Shown here piece after piece: positions 4,575 to 60,995 of a DNA stretch of 64,000 bases. A program made the position numbers and the translations under genes. The notes below the pieces were generated by a model. It ran no database searches. It worked only from the letters and a program-made list of their open reading frames with translations, and was not told the DNA's origin. This DNA is from Leucoraja erinacea (lineage: Eukaryota). The stretch spans positions 1-64,000 of the forward strand of contig NW_026576459.1 in the NCBI RefSeq assembly GCF_028641065.1, read 5' to 3'. How positions within the stretch are numbered: the stretch's first letter is position 1; every line of letters starts with the position of its first letter.

Positions 4575-5125
4575 ACAAATAATTCTCCGACATTTTCGCC
4601 ACCTCCAACAGGATCCCACCACTGGCCACATCTTCCCATCTCCTCCCCTGTCTGCTTTTCGCAGAGACCGCTCCCTCCCGAACTCCCTGGTCAATTCGTC
4701 CCTTCCCACCCGAACCACCGCCTCTCCTGGCACTTTCCCTTGCAACCGCAGGAAATGCTACACTTATCACTTTACCTCCCCACTTGACTCCATTCAAGGA
4801 CCCAAGCAGTCTTTCCAGGTGAGACAGAGGTTCACCTGCAACTTCCCCAACCTCATCTGTTGCACCCTCTGCTATAGATGTCAGCTGCTCTACATCGGTG
4901 AGACCAAGTGTAGGCTTGGCGATCGCTTTGCCCAATACCTCCACTCGGTTCGCAATAACGAAACCTGATGTCCTGGTGGCTCAGCACTTCAACTCCCCCT
5001 CCCATTCCCAATCCCTGACCTTTGTGTCCTGGGCCTCCTCCATGGCCAGAGTGAGGCCCGCCATAAATTGGAGGAGCAGCACCTCATATTTCGCTTGGGC
5101 AGTTTGCACCCCAGCGGTATGTTCA
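4575..5125 (+). mobile_element. Penelope-like element, GIY-YIG endonuclease remnant
   Basis: Encodes CQLLYIGETKCRLGDRFA. Confidence 0.85.
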
Positions 5126-5127
5126 CC

Positions 5128-5689
5128 TTATCCGCAGGATCCCCATTTATCCTCAATGGAGTGTACGTCCTCGGATGATGTGCCCTCCTAAAGTCCATGA
5201 TCAGCTCCTTCGTTTTTTTGATGTTCAAGAGGAGGCTGTTATCTTGGCACCAGAGTGCCAGACCAGCCACCTCCTCCCGGTAGGCCTTCTCGTCGTTGTC
5301 TGAGATCAGGCCCACCACCATAGTGTCATCAGCAAACTTAATTATTGAGTTGGAGCTGAACCTAGACACACAGTCATGTGTGTACAGGGAGTACAATAGG
5401 AGGCTGAGGACGCAACCCTGGGGCGATCCTGTGCTCAGGGTGAGGGACTTTGATGTATTCCCTCCCATCTTGACTACCTGGGGCCTGGCGGTGAGAAAGT
5501 CCAGGACCCAGGCACACAGGGAGGTGTTGAGCCCCAATTCCATTAGCTTCCCGGCCAGTCTGGTGGGGACTATCGTGTTGAAGGCTGAACTGTAGCCTAT
5601 GAACAGCATCCTCATGTAACCCCCTTTCTGGCTGTCCAGATGGGAGAGAGCGGTGTGCAAGACCTGGGAGACCGCATCGTCTGTGGATC
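5128..5689 (-). mobile_element. Rex1/Babar LINE RT fragment
   Basis: [29 protein letters not shown]. Confidence 0.9.
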
Positions 5690-5977
5690 TGTACATTCCA
5701 GCATCTGATACTTTGACCCTCTTCAGTTTAAGCGAGGCATTTCCATGGGGAAACTCTTCCCGAAAGTGTTCCATCCTCCCTCGATAAGCCTCGTCCTGCA
5801 CCTCAGCTCCGTCCTGGCCGCTGGTGTATAAATGTACCGGTGATCCCGGGCTCGATGTAAACCATCGGACCTCCAGAGCGTCCAGTGATGTATCTGGTAC
5901 CTTCTGACATTCCAATAGGGCATCTTCACCCACCATGGCCACCACCGGATGGTCCGGCACAATCACAGAGAACTCCT
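5690..5977 (-). pseudogene. Truncated butyrophilin IgV exon (paralogue), fused in frame to Rex1 RT
   Basis: About 98% identical to the first 288 nt of the IgV exon at 12423; CAG acceptor; cut before the second Cys. Confidence 0.9.
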
Positions 5978-7800: not shown

Positions 7801-7956
7801 CGGGTTGTTGTGTTTGACTGAGAGTTCACAGTCTAAAATATCCGTTCCCCGCCACTCCCTGGTACTGATAAGGACAAGCGCAGTGAACTGGGCGGCACGG
7901 TGGCGCAACGGCAAAGCTGCTGCCTTCTTCTTCTTGCGAATGGCATGCACAGCCTA

Positions 7957-8184
7957 ATGTCCCTGTCCCACTTAGGAAACCTGAACGGAAACCTCTGGAG
8001 ACTTTGCGCCCCACCCAAGGTTTCCGTGCGGTTCCCGGGGGGTTTTGTCAGTCACCCTACCTGCTTCCACTACCTGCAACCTCCGGCAACCAACTGCAAC
8101 CTCCGGGAACCGCACGGAAACCTTGAGTGGGGCGCAAAGTCTCCAGAGGTTTCCGTTCAGATCTCCTAAGTGGGACAGGGGCAT
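7957..8184. mobile_element. Palindromic MITE with TA TSD
   Basis: About 85-bp inverted arms ATGTCCCTGTCCCACTTAGG... / ...CCTAAGTGGGACAGGGGCAT. Confidence 0.9.
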
Positions 8185-8241
8185 TAAAGTTGTAGGACAA
8201 CTAGTTCTATTTGATCTTATTTGATTGTGCACGCCGGAGTC

Positions 8242-8294
8242 ATTGCATTGGTCGAAACAGGGCGGACCACGTGAAGATTGCAATCTCCCACCCC
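8242..8294 (-). ncRNA. HDV/CPEB3-like self-cleaving ribozyme (predicted)
   Basis: GGGGTGG GAG ATTGCA ATC TTCACGT GGT CCGCCCT GT TTCGA CCAA TGCAAT folds as P1/P2/P3/L3/J4/2. Confidence 0.8.
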
Positions 8295-9004
8295 AGTTGC
8301 TGCCTCACAGAGACCCGGGTTCGATCCTGACTACGGGTGTTGTTTGTACGAAGTTTGTACGTTCTCCCCGCGACCGCGTGTGGTTTCTCCGAGTGCTCCG
8401 GTATTTTCCCACAATCCAAAGACGTGCAGGTTTGTAGATAATTGGCATCATGAAAATGTGTAAATTCTCCCTAGTCTGCAGGGTCGTGCTGGTGTACACG
8501 GTGATCTCTGGTCGTCGCGGACATGGTGGGCTGAAGGGGCCGTTTCCATGCTGTATCTCGAAAGTACAATCTAAAGTCTCTCCATTGGGCACGTGGTGTA
8601 TGGAAGTAACTGAATTATTTTATTTTCATATTAATGATATTTGGAAACTCTCCAGGAATATTCTTTATGCCCTATAACATCACAGTGTCAAACAATGTAA
8701 AATGCCCCCATTCGCTGTGGAAAGTATTCCCCGGACACTGTGGGAGCAACGTTCATGATTGCAACAACCACTTCAGTCCACGTACAGATCTTGTGTATGA
8801 GAGATATTACATAATCTTGTGTTAGAAAGTTCCCCTACTAGTCCTACTGTTCCCGCCTACATTCTATCTGTGTCCCATCCCCTCCCTCGACATCAGTCTG
8901 AAGAAAGGTCTCGACCATAAACGTCACCTATTCCATCTCTCCATAGATGCTACCTGTCCCGCTGAGTTACTCCAGCATTTTGTGTCTATCTTCCACTGTC
9001 CGAG

Positions 9005-9906: not shown

Positions 9907-10369
9907 GTAAGCTGTGGAATAGTCACTGCAACAGTCAATCGTGCCTTGTTCAGTAGTTTGCACACTCGGTCTAGTCTTGCATGAGTTGAGACTGGGCGGA
10001 AACGGAACAGTCAGCAGCCGCATGGGTCAAGTCGGACATGGTGGATTCAAAGCCCTTGCTGAGCCATGAGCACAGCTTTAGGCTGATGATGCTGCTCTGT
10101 TTTAGCTACTGTCTTTAGTTGTGATGAAACTGTTGACCAGAAGAGCATGTCCCCTGAAGAGGAACGTGTTCGGCTGCCTGAATATTGTTTGTCCTTCAGC
10201 AGTGTCACTGAAAGCAAATATCTTGTCGATATCACGTTGCTGCCTGTGTGAGCTTGTACATTTGGCTTCCTGCATCACAACCGTGATGACACTTCCCTTG
10301 GCACCAAATGTCTACTGACGCCTGTTGGGATGTGCTCAGGTTGGCAAATACTCTTCCATTTCTATATTC

Positions 10370-22090: not shown

Positions 22091-25000
22091 TTACGGCACC
22101 GCTGCATCACATGATTCCAAAAAGTCGATGAAAGGAGACCAACTCTTTAAGAATTGGTCATATTTATCTATTAGTCGGAGTCTCATTTCTTCAAGGCGTG
22201 CTATGTCCATCATATTCCTAATCCACATTTTAACAGTTGGTGTGGTTGTATTTTTCCAAAATTTAAGTATCAATTTCTTTCCAATTATTAACCCATAATT
22301 TAAAAAAACATTTTGATCTTTATTTAAATTGGTGTCTTCTCCTATTATTCCAAATATAATCCATTCCGTTTTGGGTTCTATTCTTGACTTGAAAATCTTT
22401 GTAAATATATCAAATATATCACTCCAAAATTTATTCAACTTTGTACATCCAACAAATGAGTGTGTTATATTAGCGTTTTGAAACAAACATTTATCGCATC
22501 TGGGAGAGACGTTTGGATAAAATTTATTCAACCTCGTTTTTGAATAATATAGTCTATGTAATAATTTGAATTGAATTAAATTATGTCTTGCATTGATAGA
22601 ACAGTTATGTGTATTCATCAAATATTTTTCCCATCTATCCTTCGAGATCTTTGTCATTAGCTCTTGTTCCCAATCTTCCCTTAATGCTTCTGTTGAGGGT
22701 GATTCTCTATTTAATATATTATTATAAAAGTATGATATTAATTTTTGTGAATCAGCCTTGATATTCATTGCTTCTTCTAAAGGATCTAAAAATATAGTTT
22801 GAAATCTATGTGTATGTTTCTTCATAAAGTCACATACCTGTATATATTTAAAATATTGATTATCCTTCAATTTAAATTTTAATTTTAATTGTTGAAATGA
22901 TAACAGTTTGCCCACTTCATACATGTCCCCTACTTTCCTAATCCCCAGTCTATCCCATTGTTGATATGTGTTGTTGATGAGAGAAGGTTTGAATGCGGGG
23001 TTGTTCAATAGTGGGGTTAGTACTGATAAATTATTTAATTTCAAGGATGCTTTTATTTGTTTCCAAATTCTTATTATATTGTGAATAATTGGGTTCTTCT
23101 TATATATTATACTATTCAATTTTATCGGTGAGAGCAGGATCGTTCCTATATCGTGCGGATAGCACTCCTCTTTCTCCATTCTTATCCACTCCAACTGCTG
23201 AGTGGAACTATCTAGCCAGTATATTATGTTCTTAATATGCACTGCCCAGTAGTAATATATAAAGTTAGGTAATGATAAACCCCCCACTTCTTTAGATTTG
23301 CACAAATGCTTTCGTTGAATTCTATGTGTTCTGTAGTCCCATATAAAAATTAGTGATAGTGGAATCTATTTTTTGAAAAAATATTTTGGAATATATATTG
23401 GGATTGCTTGAAACAAATATATTAATTGTGGTAAGAAAGTCATTTTTATAGCGTTAATTCTACCTATCAATGAGAGTGGAAGCGTTTTCCAAAATTTAAT
23501 CGTATCATTCAGTTTATTTAATAGTGGTATAAAATTGGCACTAAATAATGATTTGTGTCTTCTCGTAATTTGAATACCCAGGTACTTGAATTTTTCTGTT
23601 GCAATTTTGAAGGGGAATTTTAGTAAATGTCTCGAATCCTGTGGTTTTAAAGACATAATTTCGCTTTTATTCCAATTTATTCTGTATCCTGAAAAAGAGC
23701 CGAATTCCTCAATTAGTGTTAATAAGGTGGGTATACTCGTTTGTGTATTAGTAATATATAAAAGGATATCATCAGCGTATAATGAAATTTTATTCTTTGA
23801 GTCCTTGCTGTTATATCCGTGAATATTCGGGTGATTTCTAATCCTTTCGGCCAGCGGTTCTATCATAAGGGCAAATAGCAATGGTGATAAGGCACACCCT
23901 TGCCTATTACCCCTTGATAAGTAAAATTTTGGAGATAGCGTATTGTTAGTTAATATTCTTGCCGTAGGTCTATCATAAAGTAGTTTAATCCATCTGATAA
24001 AATTCTCTCCCATATTAAATTTTTGGAGTACCTTGTATAAATACTGCCATTCTACTTGATCAAATGCCTTCTCTGCATCCAACGTGACCACTGAGATATC
24101 TTCATTGTCCTTCTTATGAGAGTACATTATATTAAAAAGCCTTCTCAAATTATTAAATGATTGTCTTTTGGGTATAAATCCCGTTTGATCCGTATTTATT
24201 AAATTGTTAATATAATTATTTAGCCTTCTAGCTAGAATCTTTGCTAAAATTTTCTGATCCGTATTTAGAAGTGATATAGCTCTATAAGAACCAGGCTCAT
24301 CTAAATCTTTATCTTTTTTTGGTATAAGCGTTATTGTTGCTTCTGCTAGGGTTTCTGGTAGTTTATATTCAGTATAAGCCTGCGTGTATAAATTAAATAA
24401 TCTTGGTACAATAGACTCCTGAAATCTTTTATAAAATTCATTACTAAAGCCATCTGGTCCTGGGGTCTTCCCATTTTTCAATGAGTTTATTATTTGTTTT
24501 ATTTCTTCACTAGTAATCCGTGCTCCTAATTGCTCTTGTTCTAAACTATCCAATTTTGGGAGCTTGCAATTATCTAAAAAATTTGTAATTTTACTTACAT
24601 CTGTCTTTATTTTGGATGTGTATAAATTATGATAAAATTGGGCAAACCTCTTATTAATATCCTTAGGCAATGTTAGCAACTCACCATTGTCCGATTTAAT
24701 TTTTGTAATAGTTTTTTCCTTTTCTCGTTGCTTCAGTTGCCTCGCAAGCAGTTTATGTGGCTTATCCCCAAATTCGAAGTGTGCTTGTTTTGTAATTTGG
24801 AATAATCTTATTACTCTAGCCGATAATATTCTATTGACTTTATATTTCAGTAAAGTTATCTTATTATGTTTATTTATGGTTGGGTCAGTTGCATTGTCCC
24901 GTTCTAGTAATTTTATCTTCTGTTCTATCCGCTGAAGTTCTCTTTTATTTTCCTTATTTTGAAAACTTTGGTAAGAGATTATGACACCGCGAATATATGC

Positions 25001-25900
25001 CTTAAAGGTTTCCCATAATAGCGGTGCAGAAATACCCGGTGTGTCATTTATTTCGAAAAAAAGTTTTGTTTGTTCTTTTATATACTCATAACCCTGCGGG
25101 TTATTTAATATGTGTGCATTGAACCTCCAAAAAGGCTTTATACTCGGCATTCCCTCAATTTTAAGTATAAAAGTCAATGGTGAGTGATCAGAAATAATAC
25201 TATTATGATATGATGGTTTATTCGTATACGGGATCAATTTTGTGTCCAGTAAGAAATAGTCAATTCGCGAATAAGTTTTGTGAACTGATGAATAAAATGA
25301 GTATTCCCTACCACTTGGATTTGCTATTCTCCAAACATCAGCTATGTTATTATTTTTCATATAAGTATTTAAAAATTCACAGGTCTTGGTTTTAACAAGA
25401 CGCTTCCCTAGCTTTATTGATTTATCTAAATATGGATCTATAACACAATTGAAATCTCCCCCCATTATTATATTTTGAAAATTATGCTCTGCGATTAAAT
25501 CTATTATTTTCCTAAAAAATTGTGGGTTATCAAAATTAGGCGCGTAAATATTTATCATAGTTAATGGTGTATTGTAAATTTCTCCTGTGACTATAACATA
25601 TCTTCCCTCTTTATCAGATATGGAATTCTTTAATTTAAAAGGTATGCCCTTCCGAATTATAATGGCCGTGCCTCTTGCTTTAGAGGTGAATGAGGAGTAA
25701 TAGGTTTGACCTATCCAATTTGCCCTTAATCTGATCTGAGTTTGTTGTTTCAAATGTGTCTCTTGTAGGAACGCAATATCCATATTTAATGATTTTAATT
25801 GTGCCAGAATTTTACCTCTTTTAATTGGCTCATTCGCACCTCTGATGTTCCAACTACAGAAGGTGAGACCTCCGGTATTTATTCGACTATTATCTTGCAT
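22091..25900 (-). CDS. L1 ORF2 (APE endonuclease, RT, CCHC); one stop at 23366-23368
   Basis: WNIRG, LQETH, GDFN, SDH, QGCALSP, YADD, C-x2-C-x8-H-x4-C; both halves in the same frame. Confidence 0.95.
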
Positions 25901-26835
25901 TGGCTATTATTACCAGACTGTATGCTTCATGTGATGCAGCCAAGTACCTCAGAATCCCGAATCCAGAGTTGTCCTTCATAATTTCTACAGTAGTTCTACA
26001 TCTCCTGACATTATTAAACATAATTGAGGGGAAGAGAAAAACATAAAATAAAGTGTACATAAAAATGATTAAATCATGCAACACATAATTGTGAATAAAC
26101 AAAAAAAGTGAATGTAATTTATCAAAAAGGCGATAAATTACAAAAAAGCCACTTAAGGTAGCTAGATTTGTTTTAAATTTGACCTCCGTCGATGAAATTA
26201 TGCACTGGGCCCTATCCCCCTGTTAGAATTTGACCCAACGTTAGTCGGTTCCCTCTAATTGTTACCAAAATTATCATATCAGGTCATCGCTGAGCAGTTT
26301 AAAATAGAATAAAATAAAAGGGAAGGTAGAATATTTAGCTTAAAATAAAAATAATGATGGGTTAAAATACCTCATCAAAAATTACACTTTTCATTTACCT
26401 GTATGTTAGTTAATTCATTATTAGTATTTAGTAAATAAAATATATGTCTAACCTCCCCCCCCACCCTTCTTGCTATATAGTTAATCGTGTTAGTATAGGA
26501 CATTACGCCTTTAACGTTGGTTGAGTATATTGTGCGTAATTGGTTATTATTAGTTAGTTAGTATATATGTGTAAATAATAGGTCATATAGTGTGAAACAG
26601 ATGCCTCTTATCATGGCCATTTCAAAAGGCGACAGTCTCATAGTTTTCCGTGCTTCAGAATTTGGTGATGTGCTTGCAACCTTGAGAGTTCCTATGTGCT
26701 TTCAGTTCAGAAGATTAGTTCGGCCCGTGTTATTAAATAGCACATTCTTTGCAGATAAGACTGTCTGGTAACTGTCTGAAGGTTTCGAGTGGTTTAATTT
26801 GAACAGAAAAAAACGGTTTCCAGACAAAATGTCAA

Positions 26836-27933
26836 TTAATCTGATCCTGATTGAATTTTGTTTAAAATCTCCTCGGCGTATTTGCAGGCAGCGTCCGGGT
26901 CGGTAAATGAGCGTTGCTTGCCCTTAAAAGTAATTAGCATTTTTGCTGGATAGATCACGCCATAACGAACTTCAGAATGTCCATATAAAACACTGCTTGC
27001 AGTTTTAAACTCGCGTCTTTTTGCCAGAATTTCCCGAGGGTAATCCCTGTAGAATCTTACGATATTATCAGCGAATGTAAGATTTTCTCCATATTTTATC
27101 TTCTTTAATAGAGTTTCCACAGTTGAAATATCTAGAAACTTTACAATAATTTGCCTTGGTTTAGCATTATCGTGTTTTTGGAGGCGACCCACTCGATGAG
27201 CCAGATCTATCTTTGGTTTTTCAGGAAGTTTGAAAACATCTTTAAGTAGATTAGTAATAAAATCACGCATTTGAAGGCCGTGTTCGGCACCCTCTTTAAT
27301 TCCTACAAGTCTCAGATTTTGTCTCCTAGACCTGGCCTCTAAATCTTGACATTTCTCATTCAATTTATTTGTTAACTGCCAATTCGTATCGTGTTGTTTT
27401 TTCAGACCTGTTATCTCTTGGCTCATCTGTTCCATCTCACCCTCCATTTCTTCCATCAATTTTTCCGTGTCTGTTAATTGCTTCAGCAGGATGTCATGTT
27501 TGTTGTTGTACTCTCTCCGCATACTTTCCATTTCCTTCGCTGTGCTGGACTCCAAATCTTTAAACTGCTGTTTCAGGGCTACATAAAGCTCTTTTACTTC
27601 GCCACAGCTCTTATCAATTTTCATAGAAAGATTGCCCTCCATAGTGGAGAAGTTATTCTGAATTGTAGAATTCATTTTGGCAAATTGCTGCTGAAGATCT
27701 TTACTAATCTCTTTAAGAATCTTAGCTCTTACCGTTTCTTCCCAGCTTTTCATTTGTTTCTCCTTTGTATCACTTCTCGCAGCCATATCGCTTGTAGGTT
27801 GTTGAGGTTCCAGCTCCTCTTCCAAACTTTCAGACGAGAGTTCAGGGGTAGTTTCAAGCTCATCCAGAGCTTTTTGGAGCTGGAGACTGATTGTAGTTTT
27901 CTTGGGTCCTCTCTGACCTCTTCTCTTTCTCAT
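26836..27933 (-). CDS. L1 ORF1 (coiled coil, RRM, CTD), 365 aa
   Basis: LEARSRRQNLRLVGIKEG, AHR and YPAK motifs. Confidence 0.93.
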   Translation of the reverse strand: MRKRRGQRGPKKTTISLQLQKALDELETTPELSSESLEEELEPQQPTSDMAARSDTKEKQMKSWEETVRAKILKEISKDLQQQFAKMNSTIQNNFSTMEGNLSMKIDKSCGEVKELYVALKQQFKDLESSTAKEMESMRREYNNKHDILLKQLTDTEKLMEEMEGEMEQMSQEITGLKKQHDTNWQLTNKLNEKCQDLEARSRRQNLRLVGIKEGAEHGLQMRDFITNLLKDVFKLPEKPKIDLAHRVGRLQKHDNAKPRQIIVKFLDISTVETLLKKIKYGENLTFADNIVRFYRDYPREILAKRREFKTASSVLYGHSEVRYGVIYPAKMLITFKGKQRSFTDPDAACKYAEEILNKIQSGSD

Positions 27934-29994
27934 CCAGTTTTTATGATAAGATCGTTTTAAATCCCAAAACCACCAGTATCGTTTGATGGAGTCAGTACCC
28001 TTGACGTTCAGCAAACCTGATAAGAATTTTTAACTCGTTCCTGGTATGGGAGTCGACTTTAAACGCGATTTGTCTGGAGGAGAGCCCAGTGCAGCTGCCT
28101 TCACTGCTTCATAGCAGCCACCGGAAGTCTATTCCTGCAGATTTGTCAGACGAACCTCCCCTTCACAAAACAGTGCTGACTTTGACCTATTTTATCATGA
28201 ACCAAGTTCTCCATAAACTCAGCCTTTATAATGGAGTCTAAAATCTTACCAACCACCGTAGTCAGACTAACCGGCCTATAGTTCCCAATATTCTGCTTTG
28301 TTCCCTTCTTGTACAGTGGGGTAATATTGGCAAATTTCCAATTGTCTGGAACCACTCCTGACTCTAGTGATTCTTGAAATATCACAGATGCTATGTATTA
28401 TCTATCTATGTATTAATGCCTCCACAATCTCTAAAGCCACCTCTTTCAGAACCCTGGGGTACAGTCTATCCAGTCCAGGTGACTTATCCACCTTCAGCCC
28501 TTTCAGCTTCCCAAACACCTTCACCTTAGTAATAGCCACTGCACTAACTTCCACCCCCTGACTCTCTTGTATTTCAGGTACATTGCTGATGTCTTCCACT
28601 GTGAAGACTATTGCAGAAAGTTCTTTAACTCCTCTGTCATTTCTTTATTCTCCATTATCACGTATCCTGCATCGTTTTCTAGCTGTCCAACACACACACT
28701 TACATCTTTCTCACTGTTTGTATAACTGAAGAAACTCTTGCTATCCTCTTTTATATTAGTGTCTAACTTACCTTCCTATTTCATCTTTCCTCATCTTATT
28801 GACATTTTAGTTATATCCTGTTGTTCTTTAAAAAGCTTCCCAATCCTCTGGCTTCCCACTAATCTTTGCAATGTTATACACCTTCTTGTAGTTTTATACA
28901 GTCCTTCACTTCCCTTGTCAGCCACCGTCACCTCATTCTCCCCCTGGAATCTTTCTTCTTCTTTGGAATGAAACGATCCTGCATCTTCCAGATTATTCCC
29001 AGACATTCCAGCCATTACTGTTCAACTTTCATCCCTGCTCGTGTCCTTTTCCATTCAACTTTGGCCATCTTCTCCCTCATGCCTCCATAGTCCCCTTTGC
29101 CCAACTACAATACCGACACATCTGATTTCACCTTCTCCCTCTCAAATTGCAGGTTGAATCTTATCATATTGTGATCGCTACCTCCTAGTGGTCCCTTTAC
29201 CTCGAGTTCCCTTGTCAAATCCCGTTCATTACACAACACTAATCCAGAGTTTCATTTTTTGATGGTGGGCTTCATCACAAGCTGCTGTAAGAATCCATCT
29301 CAGTGGCATTCTAGAAATTCCCTTTCTTGGGGACATGTACCAACCTTCCTGCATATTGAAATCTCCCATCACCACCATCGTAATGCCTTTCTTACATGCC
29401 AATTGTATATTCTGATGTAACTTGTACCCTATATCCTGGTTACTGTTTGGGGGTCAGTAGATATCTCCCATTAGAGTCTTTTTACCCTTATAATTACTCA
29501 ACTCTATCCATAATGAGTCTACATCTACTGATCCCATGCCACCCATCGCAAGGGACTGAATTTCATTCCTTACCAACAGAGCTGCCTCACCCGCCTTGCC
29601 CACTTGTCTGTCTGTCTTTCCCATAGGAGGTATAACCCTGAATATTCAGCTCCCAGCTCCAATCCTCTTGCAGCCATATCTCTGTAATTCCCACAACATC
29701 ATGCCTACCAATCTGTAACTGTGCTACAAGCTCATCCACTTTATTTCTCATCCTACACACATTGAAATACAACACCTTTCATTCTGTATTCACCTCCCCT
29801 CCTCTCAAACCAATCCCAAAGTTACCTGACCTTACTCTCTTATCCCTTCTTTAACTTTCCGTCCTGTTATTTCTGGAGACTTCTGTAGCTTTTCTGCACT
29901 CTCTTTCCCTTTAACTCCACCCTTACACTTCCAATTTGTTACTCTCCACACCCCACTATTTGGTTTGAAGCTCTATCTACAGCCCTAGTTATAG

Positions 29995-40017: not shown

Positions 40018-40700
40018 TTAATAGCCTGATGGCAGTGGAGAGATGAGTGTGTGGCCAGGATGGTGTGGGTCCTTGATGATGCTGCCAGCCTTTTTGAGGC
40101 AGCAACTGCGATAGATCCCTTCGATGGTGGGGAGGTCAGAGCCGATGATGTACTGGGCAGTGGTCACAACTTTCTGCATTCTTTTCCGCTCCTGGACGTT
40201 GAAGTTGCCGAACCAAGCCACAATGCAACTGGTCAGCATGCTCTCTACTGTGCACCAGTAGAAGTTAGAGAGATTCCTCCTTGACAAACCAACTCTCCGT
40301 AATCTTCTCAGGAAGTAGAGGTGCTGATATGCTTTCTTTACAATTGCATCAATGTGCTGGGACCAGGAAAGATCTTCAGAAATATGCACGCCCAGGAACT
40401 TCTTGACTCTTTCCACCATATAAACGGGATTGTGGGTCCCTATCCTACCCCTTCCAAAGCCCACAATCAGTTCCTTGGTGTTGCTGGTGTTGAGAGCCAG
40501 GTTATTGTGCTGGCACCATTTGGTGAATAGGTCGATCTCACTTCTATACTCTGACTCGTCCCCATCAGTGATTCGTCCCACAACAGTAGTGTCGTCGGCG
40601 AACTTGATGATGGAGTTCGCACTATGACTGTCTACACAGTCATGAGTATAGAGTGAGTACAGCAGGGGGCTGAGCACGCAGACTTGAGGTGCTCCCGTGT
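40018..40700 (-). mobile_element. Rex1/Babar RT 3' fragment
   Basis: GAPQVCVLSP, KFADD, FLGVHISEDLSW. Confidence 0.9.
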
Positions 40701-40861
40701 NNNNNNNNNNNNNNNNNNNNNNNNNNNNNNNNNNNNNNNNNNNNNNNNNNNNNNNNNNNNNNNNNNNNNNNNNNNNNNNNNNNNNNNNNNNNNNNNNNNN
40801 NNNNNNNNNNNNNNNNNNNNNNNNNNNNNNNNNNNNNNNNNNNNNNNNNNNNNNNNNNNNN
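40701..40861. other. Assembly gap
   Basis: N run. Confidence 1.
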
Positions 40862-40919
40862 GAAACACAAGTAAATATATATGTATACGCACACACACAG
40901 TCGCACAAACACATATTTA

Positions 40920-43900
40920 AACTAATGTGGCAGGGGGATGGGTACAAGAGCAGAGAGGCAGGGGGGTGTAAAATGAGGGTAGAAGAAAGAGGTAGCAAGG
41001 TGCAAAGTAAAAGTGGCTGGCAGACAAAACCAGGGCAAAAATCAAAAAGGGCCACTTCTCAACATAATTGTATAAGGGGTAAGAGAGTTGTAAGCCTGAA
41101 GGCTTTGTGTCTCAATGCAAGGAGTATTCGTAATAAGGTGAATGAGTTGAACGTGCAGATAGCCATTAATGATTATGATATAGTTCGGATCACGGAGACA
41201 TGGCTCCAGGGTGACCAAGGCTGGGAGCTGAACATCCAGGGATATTCAATATTCAGGAGGGATAGAGAGAAAGGAAAAGGAGGTGGGGTAGCATTGCTGG
41301 TTAGAGAGGAGATTAACGCAATGGAAAGGAAGGACATTAGTTTGGAGGATGTGGAATCGGTATGGGTAGAGCTGCGAAACACTAAGGGGCAGAAAACGCT
41401 GGTGGGTGTTGTGTACAGGCCACCTAACAGTAGTAGTGAAGTTGGAGATGGTATCAAACAGGAAATTAGAAATGCGTGCGACAAAGGCAATGCAGTTATA
41501 ATGGGTGACTTCAATCTACATATAGATTGGGTGAATCAAATTGACAGGGGTGCTGAGGAAGAGGATTTTTTGAAATGTATGCGGGATAGTTATCTAAATC
41601 AACATGTAGAGGAACCAACGAGAGAGCTGGCTATTTTAGACATAGTATTGAGTAATGAGGAAGGATTAGTTAGCAATCTTGTTGTACGTGCCCCCTTGGG
41701 CAAGAGTGACCATAATATGGTTGAGTTCATCATTAGGATGGAGAGTGACATTGTTAATTCAGAAACAATGGTTTTGAACTTAAAGAAAGGTAACTTTGAG
41801 GGTATGAGACGTGAATTGGCCAAGATTGACTGGCAATTAATTCTAAAAGGGTTGACGGTGGATATGCAATGGAAGACATTTAAATACTGCATGGATGAAC
41901 TACAAAAATTGTTCATCCCAGTTTGGCAAACGAATAAATCAGGGAAGGTAGTGCATCCGTGGATAACAAGGGAAATCAGGGATAGTATCAAAGCGAAGGA
42001 TGATGCGTACAAATTAGCCAGAAAAAGCAGCATATCGGACGACTGGGAGAAATTCAAAGACCAGCAGAGGAGGACAAAGGGCTTAATTAGGAAAGGGAAA
42101 ATAGATTATGAAAGAAAACTGGCAGGGAACATAAAAACTGACTGCAAAAGCTTTTATAGATATGCGAAAAGAAAAAGATTAGTTTAAACAAATGTAGGTC
42201 CCTTGCAGTCAGAAACAGGTGAATTGATCATGGGGAAAAAAGGACATGGCAGGCCAATTGAAAACTACTTTGGTTCTTTCTTCACGATGGAAGACATAAA
42301 TAATCTGCCGGAAATAGCAGGGGACCGGGGGCCAAATGAGTTGGAGGAACTGAGTGAAATCCAGGTTAGTCGGGAAGTGGTATTAGGTAAATTGAATGGA
42401 TTAAAGGCCAATAAATCCCCAGGGCCAGATAGGCTGCATCCCAGAGTGCTTAAGGAAGTAGCCCCAGAAATAGTGGATGCGTTAGTGATAATTTTTCAAA
42501 TTCTTTAGATGATGGAGCAGCTCCTGAGGATTGGAGGGTAGCTAATGTAACCCCACTTTTTAAAAAGGGAGGGAGAGAGAAAACGGGGAATTACAGACCA
42601 GATAGTCTAACATCGGTAGTGGGGAAACTGCTAGTCAGTTAATAAAGATGGGATAGCAGCACATTTGCAAAGTGGTGAAATCATTGGACAAAGTCAGCAT
42701 GGATTTATGAAAGGTAAATCATGTCTGACGAGTCTTATAGAATTTTTTGAGGATGTAACTAGTAGAGTGGACAAGGGAGAACCAGTGGATGTGTTATATC
42801 TGGACTTTCAGAAGGCTTTCGACAAGGTCCGACATAAGAGATTAGTATGCAAACTTAAAGCACACGGCATTCGGGGTTCAGTATTGATGTGGATAGAGAA
42901 CTGGCTAGCAGACAGGAAGCAAAGAGTAGGAGTAAACGGGTCCTTTTCAGAATGGCAGGCAGTGACTAGTGGGGTACCACAAGGCTCAGTGCTGGGACTC
43001 CAGCTATTTACAATATATATTAATGATTAGGACGAGGGAATTGAATGCAACATCTCCAAGTTTGCGGATGACACGAAGCTGGGGAGCAGTGTTAGCTGTG
43101 AGCAGGAGGCTAGGAGGCTGCTCGGTTACTTGGATAGGTTGGGTGAGTGGGCAAATGCAGGGCAGATGCAGTATAATCTGGATAAATGTGAGGTTATCCA
43201 CTTTGGTGGCAAAAACAGGAAAGCAGACTATTATCTGAATGGTGGCCGATTAGGAAAAGGGGGAGATGCAACGAGACTTGGGTGTCATGGTACATCAGTC
43301 ATTGAAAGTAGACTTTCCTGAAGCAGAAAGTCCAGCATCTGCACTTCCTTCTTGAACACATTGAAAGTAGGCATGCATGTGCAGCAGACAGTGAAGAAAG
43401 CAAATGGCATGTTAGCATTCATAGCAAAAGGATTTGAGTATAGGAGTAGGGAGGTTCTACTGCAGTTGTACAGGGCCTTGGTGAGACCACACCCGGAGTA
43501 TTGTGTACAGTTTTGGTCTCCTAATCTAAGGAAATACATTCTTGCCATAGAGGGAGTACAGAGAACGTTCACCAGACTGATTCCTCGGATGGCAGGACTT
43601 AAATATGCTGAAAGACTGGATAGACTCAGCTTGTACTCGCTTAGAAGATTGAGGGGGGATCTTATAGAAACTTACAAAATTCTTAAGGGGTTGGACAGGC
43701 TAGATGCAAGAAGATTGTTCCCGATGTTGGGGAAGTCCAGAACAAGGGGTCACAGTTTAAGGATAAGGGGGAAGTTTTTTAGGTCCGAGATGACAAAAAA
43801 GATTTTCACACAGAGAGTGGTGAATCTGTGGAATTCTCTGCCACAGAAAGTAGTTGAGGCCAGTTAATTGGCTATATTTAAGAGGGAGTTAGATGTGGCC

Positions 43901-47209: not shown

Positions 47210-50200
47210 AGAATGGCCTCTCTCTGCTTAGGGAGAGCGAGGAGGTCATAGAAAGGAGGTACATACAGGTACCAACGACATAGGTAAAAAAAGAGAAGAG
47301 GTCCTGAAAGAAGAATTTAGGGAGTTAGGTAGAGAGTTAAGGAGAAGGACTGCAAAGGTAACAATCTCAGGATGACTGCCTGTGCCACGCGACAGTGAGA
47401 GTAGAAACGGAGCGAGGTGGAGGATAAATGAGTGGATGAGGGACTGGTGCAGTGGGTATGGATTCAAGTTTCTGGATCATTGGGACCACTTTTGGGGAAG
47501 GTGCGACCTGTACAGAAAGGACGGGTTGCACTTGAACCCGAGGGGGACCAATATCCTGCCGGGGAGATTTGCAAATGCTACTGGGGAGACTTTAAACTAG
47601 TATGGTTGGGGGGAGGGACTCAAATTGGGAAATCTAGCAGTCAGTGTGTAAGGCAGGAGGCAGAGAATGGTAGCATTCTGACCCAAAATGTAGGGGAGAG
47701 AGAAGAAGAAGAAAATAAACAGAGAATAAGAGAGGGTGCGTTTCTTAAATGTGTATATTTTAATGCTAGGAGCATTGTAAGAACGGTGGATGAACTTAGA
47801 GCCTGGATTGACACCTGGAAGTATGATGTTGTGGCGATCAGTGAAACATGGTTGCAGGAGGGCTGTGATTGGAAACTAAATATTCCAGGATTTCGTTGCT
47901 TCAGGTCTGATAGAATTGGAGGGGCAAGAGGAGGAGGTGTTGCATTGCTTATCAGGGAAGATATTACAGCAGTGCTTTGGCAGGATAGATTAGAGGGCTC
48001 GTCTAGGGAGGCTATTTGGGTGGAACTGAGAAATGGGAAAGGGGTAGAAACACTTATAGGGGTGTATTATAGACCGCCAAATGGGGAGCGAGAATTGGAA
48101 GCGCAAATATGTAAGGAGATTGCAGATATTAGTAGTAAGCACAAGGTAGTGATTGTGGGAGATTTCAATTTTCCACACATAGACTGGGAAACACATTCTG
48201 TAAATGGGCTGGATGGGTTGGAGTTTGTAAAATGTGTGCAGGATAGTTTTTTGCAGCAATACATAGAAGTACCTACTAGAGAAGGGGCAGTGCTGGACCT
48301 CCTGTTAGGAAATGAGACGGGTCAGGTGGCAGAGGTATGCGTTGGGGAACAGTTCGGGACCAGTGATCACAATACCATTAGTTTCAATATAATTATGGAG
48401 AGGGTCAGAACTGGACCTAGGGTTGAGATTTTTGATTGGAGAAAGGCTAACTTTGATGAGATGCGAGATGATTTAAAAGGAGTGAACTGGGACATTTTGT
48501 TTTATGGGAAAGATGTGGAAGAGAAATGGAGGACATTTAAAGGGGAAATTTTAAGAGTACAGAATCTTTATGTTCCTGTTCGGTTGAAAGGAAACAGTAA
48601 AAATTGGAAAGAGCCCTGGTTTTGAAGGGAAATTGGACATCTTGTTCGGAAAAAGAGGGAGATCTACAATAATTATAGGCAGCATGAAGTAAATGAGGTG
48701 CTTGAGGAGTATAAGGAATTAAGGGACAGAAGTTTAGGGGTAATATGAGGGGGGACTTCTTTACTCAGAGGGGTGGTAGCGGTGTGGAATGAGCTTCCAG
48801 TGGAAGTGGTGGAGGCAGGTTCATTGGTATCATTTAAAAATAAATTGGATAGGCATATGGATGAGAAGGGAATGGAGGGTTATGGTATGAGTGCAGGCAG
48901 GTGGGACTAAGGGGGAAAAAAAAAGTTGTTCGGCATGGACTTGTAGGGCCGAGATGGCCTGTTTCCGTGCTGTAATTGTTATATGGTTATATGGTTAATG
49001 TAAAAAGAATCTTAAAAAAGAAATTAGAAAAGCTAAAAGAAGATATGAGGTTGCTTTGGCAGGTAAGGTGAAAGTAAATCCAAAGGGTTTCTACAGCTAT
49101 ATTAATAGCAAAAAGATAACGAGGGATAAAATTGGTCCATTAAAGAGCCAGAGTGGACAGCTATCTGCAGAGCCAAAAGAGATGGGGGAGATATTGAACA
49201 ATTTTTTTTCTTCGGTATTCACCAAGGAGAAGGATATTGAATTATGTGAGGCAAGGGAAACTAGTAGAGTAGCTATGGATACTATGTGGTTCAAAGTAAA
49301 AGAAGTACTGACACTTTTAAAAAATATAAAAGTGGATAAGTCTCCAGGTCCTGACAGGATATTCCCTACGACATTGAGGGAAGTTAGTGTAGAAATAGCC
49401 GGGGCTAGGACAGAAATATTTCAAATGTCATTAGAAACGGGAATAGTCCCCGAGGATTGGCGTACTGCGCATGTTGTTCCATTGTTTAAAAAGGGTACTA
49501 AGAGTAAACCTAGCAATTATAGACCTGTTAGTTTGACTTCAGTGGTGGGCAAATTAATGGAAAAGATACTTAGAGATAATATATATAAGCATCTGGATAA
49601 ACAGGGTCTGATTAGGAACAGTCAACATGGATTTGTGCCTGGAAGGTCATGTTTGACTAATCTTCTTGAATTTTTTGAAGAGGTTACTAGGGAAATTGAC
49701 GAGGGTAAACCAGTGGATGTTGTCTATATTGGGCTTTAGTAAGGCCTTTGACAAGGTTCCTCATGGAAGGTTGGTTAAGAAGGTTCAACTGTTGGGTATA
49801 AATGCAGGAATAGCAAGATGGATTCAACAGTGGCTGAATGGGAGAAGCCAGAGGGTAATGGTGGATGGCTGTTTATCGGGTTGGAGGCAGGTGACTAGTG
49901 GGGTGCCTCAGGGATCTGTGTTGGGTCCTTTGTTGTTTGTCATGTACATCAATGATCTGGATGAAGGTGTGGTAAATTGGATTAGTAAGTATGCAGATGA
50001 TACCAAGATAGGGGGTGTTGTGGATAATGAAGAGGATTCCCAATGTTTACAGAGTGATTTAGGCCATATGGAAAAATGGGCTGAAAGATGGCAGACGGAG
50101 TTCAATGCTGATGAATGTGAGGTACAAATCAAAATAGGACGTACATGGTAAATGGTAGGGAATTGAAGAATACAGTTGAACAGAGGGATCTGGGTATAAC

Positions 50201-55057: not shown

Positions 55058-55968
55058 TATAAGGAATAAAGTGGACGAGCTTGAGGCTCAGTTAGAAACT
55101 GGCAAGTATGATGTTGTGGGAATTACTGCAAGAGGGCCAGGGCTGGGAACTGAATATTCAAGGGTATACCTCCTATCGAAAAGACAGACAGGTGCCCTGT
55201 TGGTGAGGAATGAAATTGAGTCCCTTGCAAGGGGTGACATTGAAACAGGAGATGTGGAGTCAGTATGGATAGAACTAAGGAATTGTAAGAGTAAAAAGAC
55301 CCTAATGGGACTAATCTACAGGCCCCCAAACAGTAGCCTGGATATAGGGTACAAGTTGAATCAGGAGTTAAAATTGGCATGTAGCAAAGGTAATGCTGTG
55401 GTTGTTATGGGAGATTTCAACATGCAGGTAGACTGGGGAAATCAGGTTGGTACTGGACCCCAAGAAAGGGACTTTGTAGAGTGCCTTTGTGATGGATTCT
55501 TAGAGCAGCTAGTATTGGAGCCTACCAGGGAGAAGGCAATACTGGATTTAATGTTATATAATGAACCGGATTTGATAAAGGAACTCGAGGTTAATGAGCC
55601 ATTAGGAGGTAGTGCCCATAACATGGTCAGGTTTAATCTACAATTGGAGAGGGAGAAGGGTAGATCGGAGGTGTCAGTGTTGCAGTTGAATAAAGAGGAC
55701 TATGGGGCCATGAGGGAGGAGCTGGCCAAAGTTGACCGGAAAGATACACTAGCATGGATGACAGTGGAACAAATGGCAGGTGTTTCTAGGAATAATACAG
55801 ATCATGCAGGATCAGTTCATTCCAAGGAGGAAGAAAGGTTCCAAGGGGAGTAAGGGACGACCATGGCTGACACGGGACGTCAGGGACAGTATAAAAATAA
55901 AAGAGAAGTACAACGTAGCAAAGATGAGCGGGAAGCAAGAGGATTGGGTAATGTTTAAAGAACAACAG
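55058..55968 (+). mobile_element. CR1 endonuclease fragment
   Basis: YRPPNS, MGDFN, PTREKAILDL. Confidence 0.9.
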
Positions 55969-58499: not shown

Positions 58500-60995
58500 A
58501 GACTACTGTGTGCTGATCTTCACAGAGACCTGGCTCAGCGCGCTGGTTCCCGATGGGGCTATGGACCTAACGGACAGGTCACTGCATCAGGCTGATAGAA
58601 CAAAGGACTCTGGTAAGAGCAAGGGTAGCGGGCTCTGCATCTACATCAATAATGACTGGTGCACCAACCACACTACAGTAGAGAGCTACTGTTCCCCAGA
58701 CCTGGAATACCTACTGCTTAAATGTAGGCCGTTTTACCTGCCTCGGGAGTTTACTGTGGTTATCATCATGGCCATATACATCCCACCACAGGCTAATGGT
58801 AACCTAGCACTAGCACAGCTGCACTCGGCCATCAGTAAGCAGCAGGATGCTCACCCCGACGGTGCCTTCATTGTTGCAGGGGATTTTAACCAGGTCGACC
58901 TACGAGCCACACTCCGCAAATTCCACCAGCATATGCAGTGCCCTACCAGGGGCTCAAACACACTGGATAAAGTGTACACCAACATCAAGGACACTTACAG
59001 AGCTCTCCCCTGCCCATCTCTGGGGCAATCCGATCGCCTCTCACTGTTTCTACTGCCTGCATACAAAACCCCTCATCCGCAAGACCAAACCTGCAATAAG
59101 GACGGTCAAAATATGGCCCGAGGATGCCACCCTACAACTCCAGGACTGCTTTGATCGCACAGACTGGGACCTGTTTGTACAACAGGCTACCAGTGGTACA
59201 GAGGTAGACTTGGAGGAGTACACATCCACTGTGCTCTCCTACATCAACTGCTGTGTGGAGACTGTCACAGTGGACAAGCAAATAAAGATGTTCCCAAACC
59301 GGAAGCCCTGGATGAACAAGGAGGTTCAGGATCTGCTAAGGGCACGCAACAATGCCTTTAAATCCAGGGACACTTCTGCCTACAGTGCGGCCAGGTCGAA
59401 CCTGAACAAAGGCATAAAAAAGGCCAAAGACATCCACAGGCAAAGGGTAGAAGAACACTTCAATACCACGGACACCAGAAGCATGTGGCAGGGTGTCAGG
59501 GACATCACTGACTACAAGAGCAGCCCCGCCTTCCCCCACGGTGATATCACACTGGCCAACGAACTAAACACCTTCTTTGCCCGGTTCGAAACTGGCAACA
59601 CCACCAGGAGTGGAATAACCCCGGCCATGGTGGAGGGACAGGCCTTAACACTGAGCACTCAGGAGGTACAGTGCGCTCTGCGTAGGATCAATCCACGCAA
59701 GGCTGCAGGCCCGGATGGAGTCCAGGGAAGGGTACTAAAGGACTGTGCTGTACAGCTGGCGGAGGTATTCACGAGAATCTTCAATCTGTCTCTATCTCTG
59801 GCAACGGTCCCCAAGTGCCTGAAAACAGCCACCATAGTGCCGGTGCCGAAAATGTCCAAAGTCACCAACCTGAACGACTACCGCCCGGTTGCCCTAACTC
59901 CAATCCCAATGAAATGCTTCGAAAGGCTGGTCCTCTCCCACATCAAATCCAGCATCCCTGCCTCACTGGACTCTCATCAATTTGCATACAGGGCAAATAG
60001 ATCAACAGAGGATGCCATCTCTCTGGCTCTTCACACTGTCCTGACTCACCTGGACAGACAGGGCACGTACGTGAGGATGCTCTTCATTGACTATAGCTCT
60101 GCATTCAATACGGTCATCCCCACCAAGCTCACCACCAAACTCCACCAGCTAGGCCTCAGCTCGCCGATATGCGATTGGATCCTGAACTTTCTGACGGAGC
60201 GACCGCAGGTAGTGAGACTGGACCCGCACCTGTCCTCCACTATCACCCTGAGCACTGGCACATCACAGGGCTGTGTACTAAGCCCCATGCTCTACTCCCT
60301 CTTCACTCACGACTGTGTTCATGCATTCGACACCAACACCATCGTCAACGGTGATGAAACTAAATACAGAGCGGAGGTGCAGAACCTGGCGGACTGGTGC
60401 ACACATAACAACTTCACTAAACACCTCCAAGATCAAGGAGCTGATTATTGACTTCAGGAGGTCCCATAATGGAGAATACGCCCCAATCTCCATTTACGGG
60501 GACAGTGTGGAGAGAGTGTCCAGCTTTAAATTTCTGGGCACTCACATTTCAGAGGACCTCACATGGTCCACCAACACCGCTGCGCTGGTCAAGAAGGCAC
60601 AGCAACGACTGTTCTTCCTGAGGACATTAAAAAAGACTGGTCTGCCCCAACAGCTGCTGACAACGTTTTACCGCTGCACAACAGAGAGCATATTAACGTA
60701 TGGCATCTCTGTGTGGTATCTCAGCTGCATGGAGGCGGAGAGGAGAGCTCTTCAGCGCGTCGTCCACAGAGCGCAGAGGATCATTGGGACAGAGCTACCA
60801 GCCTTGGAGGGCATCTACCACACACGGTGCCTCAGGAAGGCTGTCAGCATCCATAAAGGCTCATCACACCCCTGTAACGGTCTATTCGAACTACTTCCCT
60901 CCGGCAGGCATTACAAGGCCTTCTACGCCCGAACCTCCAGACTCAGAAACAGCTTTATTCCAAGAGCTATAGCGGCTCTGAACCGGCCCTGCTGA
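58500..60995 (+). mobile_element. Rex1/Babar LINE (EN+RT), frameshifted, FADD segment deleted
   Basis: FTETWL, AGDFN, NDYRPVALT, QGCVLSP; NTIV joins directly to NGDE. Confidence 0.93.

Follow-up and report, generated by a model that had tools for sequence, protein, structure and literature searches.

The insertion that starts at position 8294 on the minus strand of the skate DNA studied here (the window, a whole stretch of 64,000 nucleotides from Leucoraja erinacea) is best explained as a 139-nt copy, later split by a MITE, of a non-autonomous non-LTR retroposon that is very abundant, and its first 53 nt are best explained as a minimal, P4-less HDV-like ribozyme, predicted from the sequence, with a CPEB3-type core. 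We consider it probable that this putative ribozyme is active, or was so until recently, and that its self-cleavage defines the 5′ end of the element. A ribozyme-headed retroposon family had been proposed at this site in an initial sequence-only reading, and the proposal was supported in the present analysis: the fold is in register, the insertion is flanked by a target-site duplication (TSD), the family is of high copy number and RNA 5′ ends are found at G1, the first base of the head.

The candidate HDV-like (delta-type) ribozyme occupies positions 8242..8294 of the minus strand (53 nt), where the index i used below equals 8295 - coordinate, so that G1 is position 8294, with the cut predicted to fall between 8295 and 8294. 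From 8294 to 8242 the minus strand carries exactly the letters first quoted, and the register given by the sequence-only reading for P1, P2, P3, L3 and J4/2 held throughout when sequence and pairs were checked. The head threads onto the HDV-like nested double pseudoknot with zero indels, all proposed pairs were confirmed by script, and the helices follow the canonical HDV-like order, with 7/7 pairs in P1, 6/6 in P2, 3/3 in P3 and the C22-G37 pair of P1.1. All features of the head lie on the minus strand. The 5′ strand of P1, GGGGUGG (index 1-7, 8288..8294), forms all seven pairs with the 3′ strand CCGCCCU (index 30-36, 8259..8265), in the order GU, GC, GC, GC, UG, GC and GC, including the wobbles G1·U36 and U5·G32; the first of these, between 8294 and 8259, closes P1, and the predicted cut coincides with the 5′ end of the element. 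J1/2 is GAG (index 8-10, 8285-8287), and the 5′ strand of P2, AUUGCA (index 11-16, 8279..8284), forms six Watson-Crick pairs with the 3′ strand UGCAAU (index 48-53, 8242..8247). P3, AUC/GGU (index 17-19/27-29), is made of the pairs AU, UG and CG and encloses L3, UUCACGU (index 20-26), the two together spanning 8266..8278. G37 and U38 (8257..8258) are the P1.1 partners of C22 (8273) and U21 (8274), and P1.1 is accordingly composed of C22-G37 plus U21·U38, with one Watson-Crick pair. P4 had been described as vestigial, but is in fact missing altogether: the linker UUCGA (index 39-43, 8252..8256), 5 nt in length and not a helix, stands in its place. J4/2, CCAA in this copy (index 44-47, 8248..8251), has the candidate catalytic C44 (8251) as its first base, the position expected from the rule for HDV-like ribozymes (PMC10879173).

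P2 is short and AU-rich, and is worth -2 kcal/mol alone. As calculated with an energy model that excludes pseudoknots, the plain minimum free energy (MFE) of the present copy is ordinary (z = +0.58), and its MFE structure prefers a competing hairpin that is favored by U18; with the letters of the family majority (C18 and G45), the MFE structure of the nested part is exactly P1 plus P3, at -12.4 kcal/mol.

The comparison with the CPEB3 ribozyme (RF00622) was made by eye, using the mouse 'cleaved' primer GTTCACGTCGCGGCC (PMC10274809 table 2) and the nucleotides U20, U21, C22, A23, G25, U26, G37 and U38 that are named in an NMR study (PMC4836649). Positions 1-38 are collinear and the named letters are shared through index 38: L3 UUCACGU is identical, both ribozymes have G37 and U38 as well as G1·U36, and in both P1.1 is C-G plus U·U. 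The match of L3 and the following GU to CPEB3, which the sequence-only reading had pointed out, is borne out by these two sources. In CPEB3, P1.1 is described as one G-C pair and a U-U pair, and the 4-nt J4/2 as C57, G58, A59 and A60 (PMC4836649). The majority of the skate family shares this CGAA, whereas the present copy has CCAA. Unlike CPEB3, the skate head lacks P4, and it has a longer J1/2 and a P2 of 6 bp; the skate element is multi-copy and mobile, while CPEB3 is a single conserved intronic locus in mammals, with a P4 hairpin. CGAA is also the J4/2 of HDV itself, and is therefore not specific to CPEB3. Relative to human CPEB3, P1 and P3 presumably differ by changes on both strands that preserve pairing.

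For an independent search of the window we used an HDV-type descriptor that required G1, a 7-bp P1 ending in U, a 3-bp P3 and a 7-8-nt L3 with C, and further a G after P1, a J4/2 of the form C-N-R-A and a P2 of at least 5 bp. The C-N-R-A form of J4/2 is that of published HDV-like descriptors. Over both strands of the whole window this descriptor, a check that the sequence-only reading had itself suggested, matched only 8294..8242, the site where the fold had been noted; a relaxed descriptor gave elsewhere in the window only AU/GU-rich, chance-like matches. In simulated windows with the same dinucleotide make-up (n=60), 0.083 descriptor matches were obtained per window, that is, per about 128 kb of strand. 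At this rate the fold alone could be due to chance in a large genome, while it is very unlikely that a chance match would start exactly where a TSD-flanked repeat starts.

Rfam was less informative. No match was obtained at the gathering threshold for the whole window, and at E up to 10 a stretch of 301 nt gave no relevant family, only weak and unrelated matches to a lncRNA and, at the MITE hairpin, to mir-769. When a 65-nt stretch was compared with 4,227 families, the sole match was RF02682, the HDV-like ribozyme of F. prausnitzii, with 11.1 bits (gathering 44) and E 3.2; the alignment starts at 8294 and spans the complete model, its P1 and P3 agreeing in register with those given above and its 20-nt P4 being replaced by 5 nt. 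RF00622 gave no match at E up to 10, and the comparison with the CPEB3 and HDV models, which the sequence-only reading had suggested as a check, gave no significant match. The score stays below the gathering threshold for HDV-like ribozymes, whose models contain P4 but are unable to score P2 or P1.1, and we take the RF02682 match as a weak pointer, not as membership. Searches of metagenome contigs with the exact 53-mer and with degenerate head patterns, and of viral contigs with the head pattern, gave 0 matches.

The head stands at the border of a well-delimited insertion. After removal of the MITE the element measures 139 nt (8294..8185 plus 7954..7926), and it lies between two copies of an 11-nt direct repeat, AGGCAGCAACT on the minus strand at its 5′ side (8295..8305) and AGGCAGCAGCT on the minus strand at its 3′ side (7915..7925), which are identical at 10/11 positions. 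It had been claimed that G1 directly adjoins the TSD, and this is true, since no spacer separates it from the 11-nt TSD at 8305..8295; the insertion, which has a TSD copy on either side and a repeat tail at its 3′ end, begins with G1. The letters of the TSD are the own sequence of a host SINE, which resumes beyond the second TSD copy. This host SINE (~7890-7925 and 8295-8480, plus strand), with the head GGCACGGTGGCGCA...GGTAGAGTTGCTGCCT, is extremely abundant in both species examined below, and its copy in the window misses 6 nt (CAGCGC) after 8307 relative to its family. It resembles the common cartilaginous-fish type.

The 5′ part of the element body (index 54-110, 8185..8241, minus strand) ends in the TA that was duplicated by the MITE, and the 3′ part (index 111-139, 7926..7954, minus strand) matches the family loose-end consensus except for 2 bases. 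Within the latter, on the same strand, are the 3′ arm of a body stem (7943-7952) and an (AAG)n tail (7926-7935) that adjoins the second TSD copy. The body stem is of 10 bp (index 60-69 with 113-122), is located just upstream of the tail and has a z of -2.2; as a plausible role, it could serve as the recognition hairpin for a LINE reverse transcriptase. Nested in the element is a palindromic MITE of 228 bp (7957..8184), with the TA target duplication at 8185-8186 and 7955-7956 and with arms of 87 nt that are 94% complementary. The MITE sits in the loop of the retroposon body stem, and its hairpin is the origin of the weak mir-769-like match in Rfam (18 bits, E 0.48).

In order to describe the family, public runs were aligned to 8180-8340 at an identity of at least 85%. 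The runs were X1 and X9, DNA contigs of organism A and of a second species (organism C), respectively, and X23 and X24, raw oligo-dT RNA runs of organism A. At this threshold 17,399 contigs from X1 and 14,081 from X9 were aligned. The summed depth drops about 50-fold from the 8288-8293 bin to the 8300-8305 bin, and similarity ends at 8294/8295; at the other side the depth continues as far as 8186 and breaks down at the MITE border, 8185. Beyond 8294 or 8295 the contigs run into AT-rich, heterogeneous sequence (agreement 0.35), indicating many independent insertions that share one 5′ end. The family that had been proposed from the single copy is therefore present, at high copy number in two species and with one uniform 5′ boundary at 8294/8295. 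Since family reads continue past 8185 into the letters found at 7954..7926, the MITE is a later insertion and the 3′ end of the family is fixed. In the DNA contigs, similarity was lost one base upstream of G1 in 105 cases and at G1 in 125, and from these losses at 8295 versus 8294 it follows that T precedes G1 more often than expected by chance; this excess of T at 8295 might reflect a preference for certain target sites, or else an extra base that is gained during integration.

A BLAST search for the element in the window gave no second copy. A 29-nt stretch on the minus strand at 9973-10000 is 79% similar to the part of the head from P1′ to P2′ (TCCGCCC...ATGCAA; E 0.39), and was rejected as a second ribozyme, as by eye it does not thread onto the fold and has no convincing upstream P1. 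It may be a decayed relative or a product of chance.

Compared with the family majority, the present copy has about 8 differences in 139 positions (~6%), two of them in the head, U18 for C18 and C45 for G45. In the majority P3 is ACC/GGU, with C18 (8277 A>G) in ~98%. Family variants, listed when they made up at least 5% as read from the summed depth, were found in the head at index 8, 18, 25, 32, 41, 42, 44 and 45, that is, at 6/19 unpaired versus 2/34 paired positions (Fisher p = 0.019), and both variants in helices preserve pairing, U18/C18 with G28 and G32/A32 with U5. No variant was listed in the 5′ strand of P1 or the 3′ strand of P2, the only one in the 3′ strand of P1 was G32>A at 8263, and index 8 in J1/2 varies from G to A. 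Places of insertion or deletion numbered 0 in the head versus 8 in the body (p = 0.006), and the body part at 8185..8241 contains 17 variable sites. The helices of the family are otherwise nearly invariant, and because of this near-invariance no true compensatory covariation is seen. C44 is kept in ~98% of the family depth, while the neighboring position 45 (8250) is G in 52%, U in 31%, A in 15% and C in less than 1%. A conserved C44 next to a free position 45 fits the C-N of the C-N-R-A form of J4/2.

The RNA runs indicated where transcripts of the family begin. In X23, 424 reads carry loose ends directly beyond 8294, and their consensus opens with 21 letters that are reverse-complementary to TATCAACGCAGAGTACATGGG, joined to G1. 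TATCAACGCAGAGTACATGGG corresponds to the 3′ portion of the SMART 5′ adapter, Clontech_5P (10.1101/2023.02.05.527185). As the consensus of a template-switch adapter is joined to G1, the cDNAs end, and the RNAs begin, at this base. The same adapter start at G1 was found in X24, less cleanly, and the adapter junction was absent in the DNA runs and in the other listed loose-end places. The reading of the adapter is a plurality consensus with an agreement of 0.41, in which reads with the adapter were not counted individually; from this agreement the adapter may be estimated to be present in roughly a quarter of the 424 X23 loose-end reads. A pile-up of read starts at G1 did not rise above the detection threshold, and both RNA libraries look unstranded. 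Strand invasion by the template-switch oligonucleotide at the GGGG run was considered and judged unlikely: the loose letters start with CCC, corresponding to three extra G before the four of the element, and invasion would be expected to give only the element's own Gs. In addition, several hundred RNA reads cross the 5′ junction into varied flanks, indicating that read-through precursors exist. RNA 5′ ends at G1 are accordingly observed in vivo, in X23 and less cleanly in X24.

An RNA 5′ end at the first base is also what any internally promoted SINE should give. The element might thus be a SINE-like retroposon of the ordinary kind, driven by a promoter inside it or upstream of it, with G1 as the transcription start and with a fold that is coincidental or has another role, and the lack of significance of the Rfam score agrees with this explanation. 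We nevertheless hold it to be unlikely. ARAGORN finds no tRNA, and there is no tRNA, 5S, 7SL or snRNA match in Rfam at E up to 10, for which reason a Pol III SINE with a tRNA-, 5S- or 7SL-derived head was rejected; A and B boxes are not seen by eye, GTTTCGACCAA having 3 mismatches to the B-box consensus. Furthermore, a full descriptor match exactly at +1 is very improbable by chance, the contrast of C44 with N45 and the bias of variants to unpaired sites fit a ribozyme, and the many RNA reads that span the 5′ junction into varied flanks point to read-through precursors. From the lack of a tRNA, 5S or 7SL head and the existence of co-transcript reads, we infer that the element is promoterless.

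A promoterless element could still carry a head that no longer cleaves. In such a case the head would derive from a genuine HDV-like ribozyme at the 5′ end of a LINE, its P4-less form being dead or very slow, and would persist as a structured 5′ module (e.g. for binding of the reverse transcriptase) or as a passenger. The absence of P4, the weakness of P2 and a P1.1 with one Watson-Crick pair are in line with such a loss, and the head could be conserved because the family is young and not because of selection. Minimal HDV-like ribozymes without P4 are, however, active and cleave in vitro (PMC10879173), CPEB3 is active with an equally weak P1.1 (PMC4836649), and a uniform end at G1 in thousands of copies, together with RNA ends at G1, needs some process that defines the end; a dead head is for these reasons distinctly unlikely. 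As for a pure chance resemblance within a repeat, free of any functional RNA structure, loose HDV motifs do have high false-positive rates and give many false positives in large genomes (PMC10879173; 0.083 per window here), but with the fold exactly at +1 of the element, L3 equal to CPEB3 at 7/7 and the majority J4/2 at 4/4, and the pattern of variation in the family, this is very improbable.

We therefore return to the self-cleaving head as the preferred reading, for which the following sequence of events is proposed. The element, without a recognizable promoter, would be transcribed inside longer host transcripts, and its head would fold into the double pseudoknot within the transcript. C44 and a bound Mg2+ would then catalyze the scission immediately 5′ of G1, which would leave an RNA starting exactly at the first base of the element. 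The 3′ stem and the (AAG)n tail would be recognized by a LINE reverse transcriptase, and target-primed reverse transcription by the LINE machinery would give rise to the 11-nt duplication. In this scheme the catalysis, the missing promoter, and the question of which LINE acts as partner, and how, are matters of inference.

An autonomous LINE with the same 3′ end was not found in the window, which was searched for (GAA)n tails and LINE ORFs. The window does contain an L1-like LINE at 22091-28014 on the minus strand, with an 844-aa ORF for endonuclease and reverse transcriptase (23366-25900); its ORF2 looks split, because the zf-RVT C-terminal part is in a separate 404-aa ORF (22091-23305), and in the ESM Atlas it is found among chordate clusters. 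At 40018-42187, 47432-48625, 55071-55853 and 58847-60451 there are several more LINE fragments that carry endonuclease and/or reverse transcriptase domains, one of them with an ALKBH8_N-like match; none has the 3′ end of the retroposon and none has an HDV-like motif upstream. A 325-aa ORF at 4989-5966 on the minus strand combines an immunoglobulin V-set domain (residues 5-92, E 2.8e-8) with a following RVT_1 fragment (E 2.4e-13), and may mark a place where a LINE fragment adjoins a V-type exon, or may be due to read-through by chance.

Among known retroposons, HDV-like ribozymes head R2, RTE, Baggins and L1Tc together with the derivatives R2 SIDEs and NARTc (PMC3414825, PMC3383444, PMC6765202), and the combination of a ribozyme with a LINE 3′ end in a non-autonomous element is known from R2 SIDEs (PMC3414825). 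The skate element resembles the R2 SIDEs of Drosophila and NARTc/SIDER of trypanosomatids (PMC3414825, PMC3383444, PMC4035085) in being short and non-coding, with a 5′ HDV-like ribozyme, here a predicted one, and a LINE 3′ end; in all of them G1 is the first base, and the RNA is released from co-transcripts, as is proposed for the skate element. It differs from R2 SIDEs in that it resides in a chordate genome at very high copy number and is dispersed in AT-rich sites instead of being specific to rDNA. Its head is also smaller, 53 nt without P4 as compared with ~184 nt in R2 and 77 nt in L1Tc. The role proposed for it, the 5′ processing of promoterless non-LTR elements from host transcripts, is the same as in the RTE, Baggins and R2 LINEs (PMC6765202), which in contrast to the non-autonomous skate element with its minimal head are autonomous and carry full-size ribozymes.

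In size (~50-55 nt) and architecture the head is similar to the drz-Mtgn/theta ribozymes (PMC10879173), with which it has in common the double pseudoknot, few nucleotides in place of P4 and the catalytic C as the first base of J4/2. Of the minimal HDV-like ribozymes, ~99% are reported to come from Caudoviricetes phages, in which they often lie at the 3′ ends of tRNAs (PMC10879173), whereas the skate head tops a eukaryotic retroposon and has a core of the CPEB3 type. In the literature we found no report of an HDV-like ribozyme in a SINE-like element of fish or shark. The skate element is, on these comparisons, a P4-less, vertebrate, high-copy variant among the known ribozyme-headed retroposons.

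A broader proposal would be that the CPEB3 ribozyme of mammals arose by exaptation from a copy of such a retroposon, the skate family being a surviving mobile relative of its ancestor, and that the P4-less HDV-like form is also natural and highly successful in eukaryotes; we regard this as doubtful, and any connection with the origin of CPEB3 in mammals as speculative. If the head cleaves, a minimal 53-nt ribozyme without P4 would have multiplied to very many copies in a genome of vertebrate type, and a promoterless retroposon could live on read-through transcription and self-cleavage. The family would then be a mobile candidate source of the CPEB3-type core, the origin of which outside mammals is unexplained, and its thousands of variants of one small ribozyme would constitute a natural data set.
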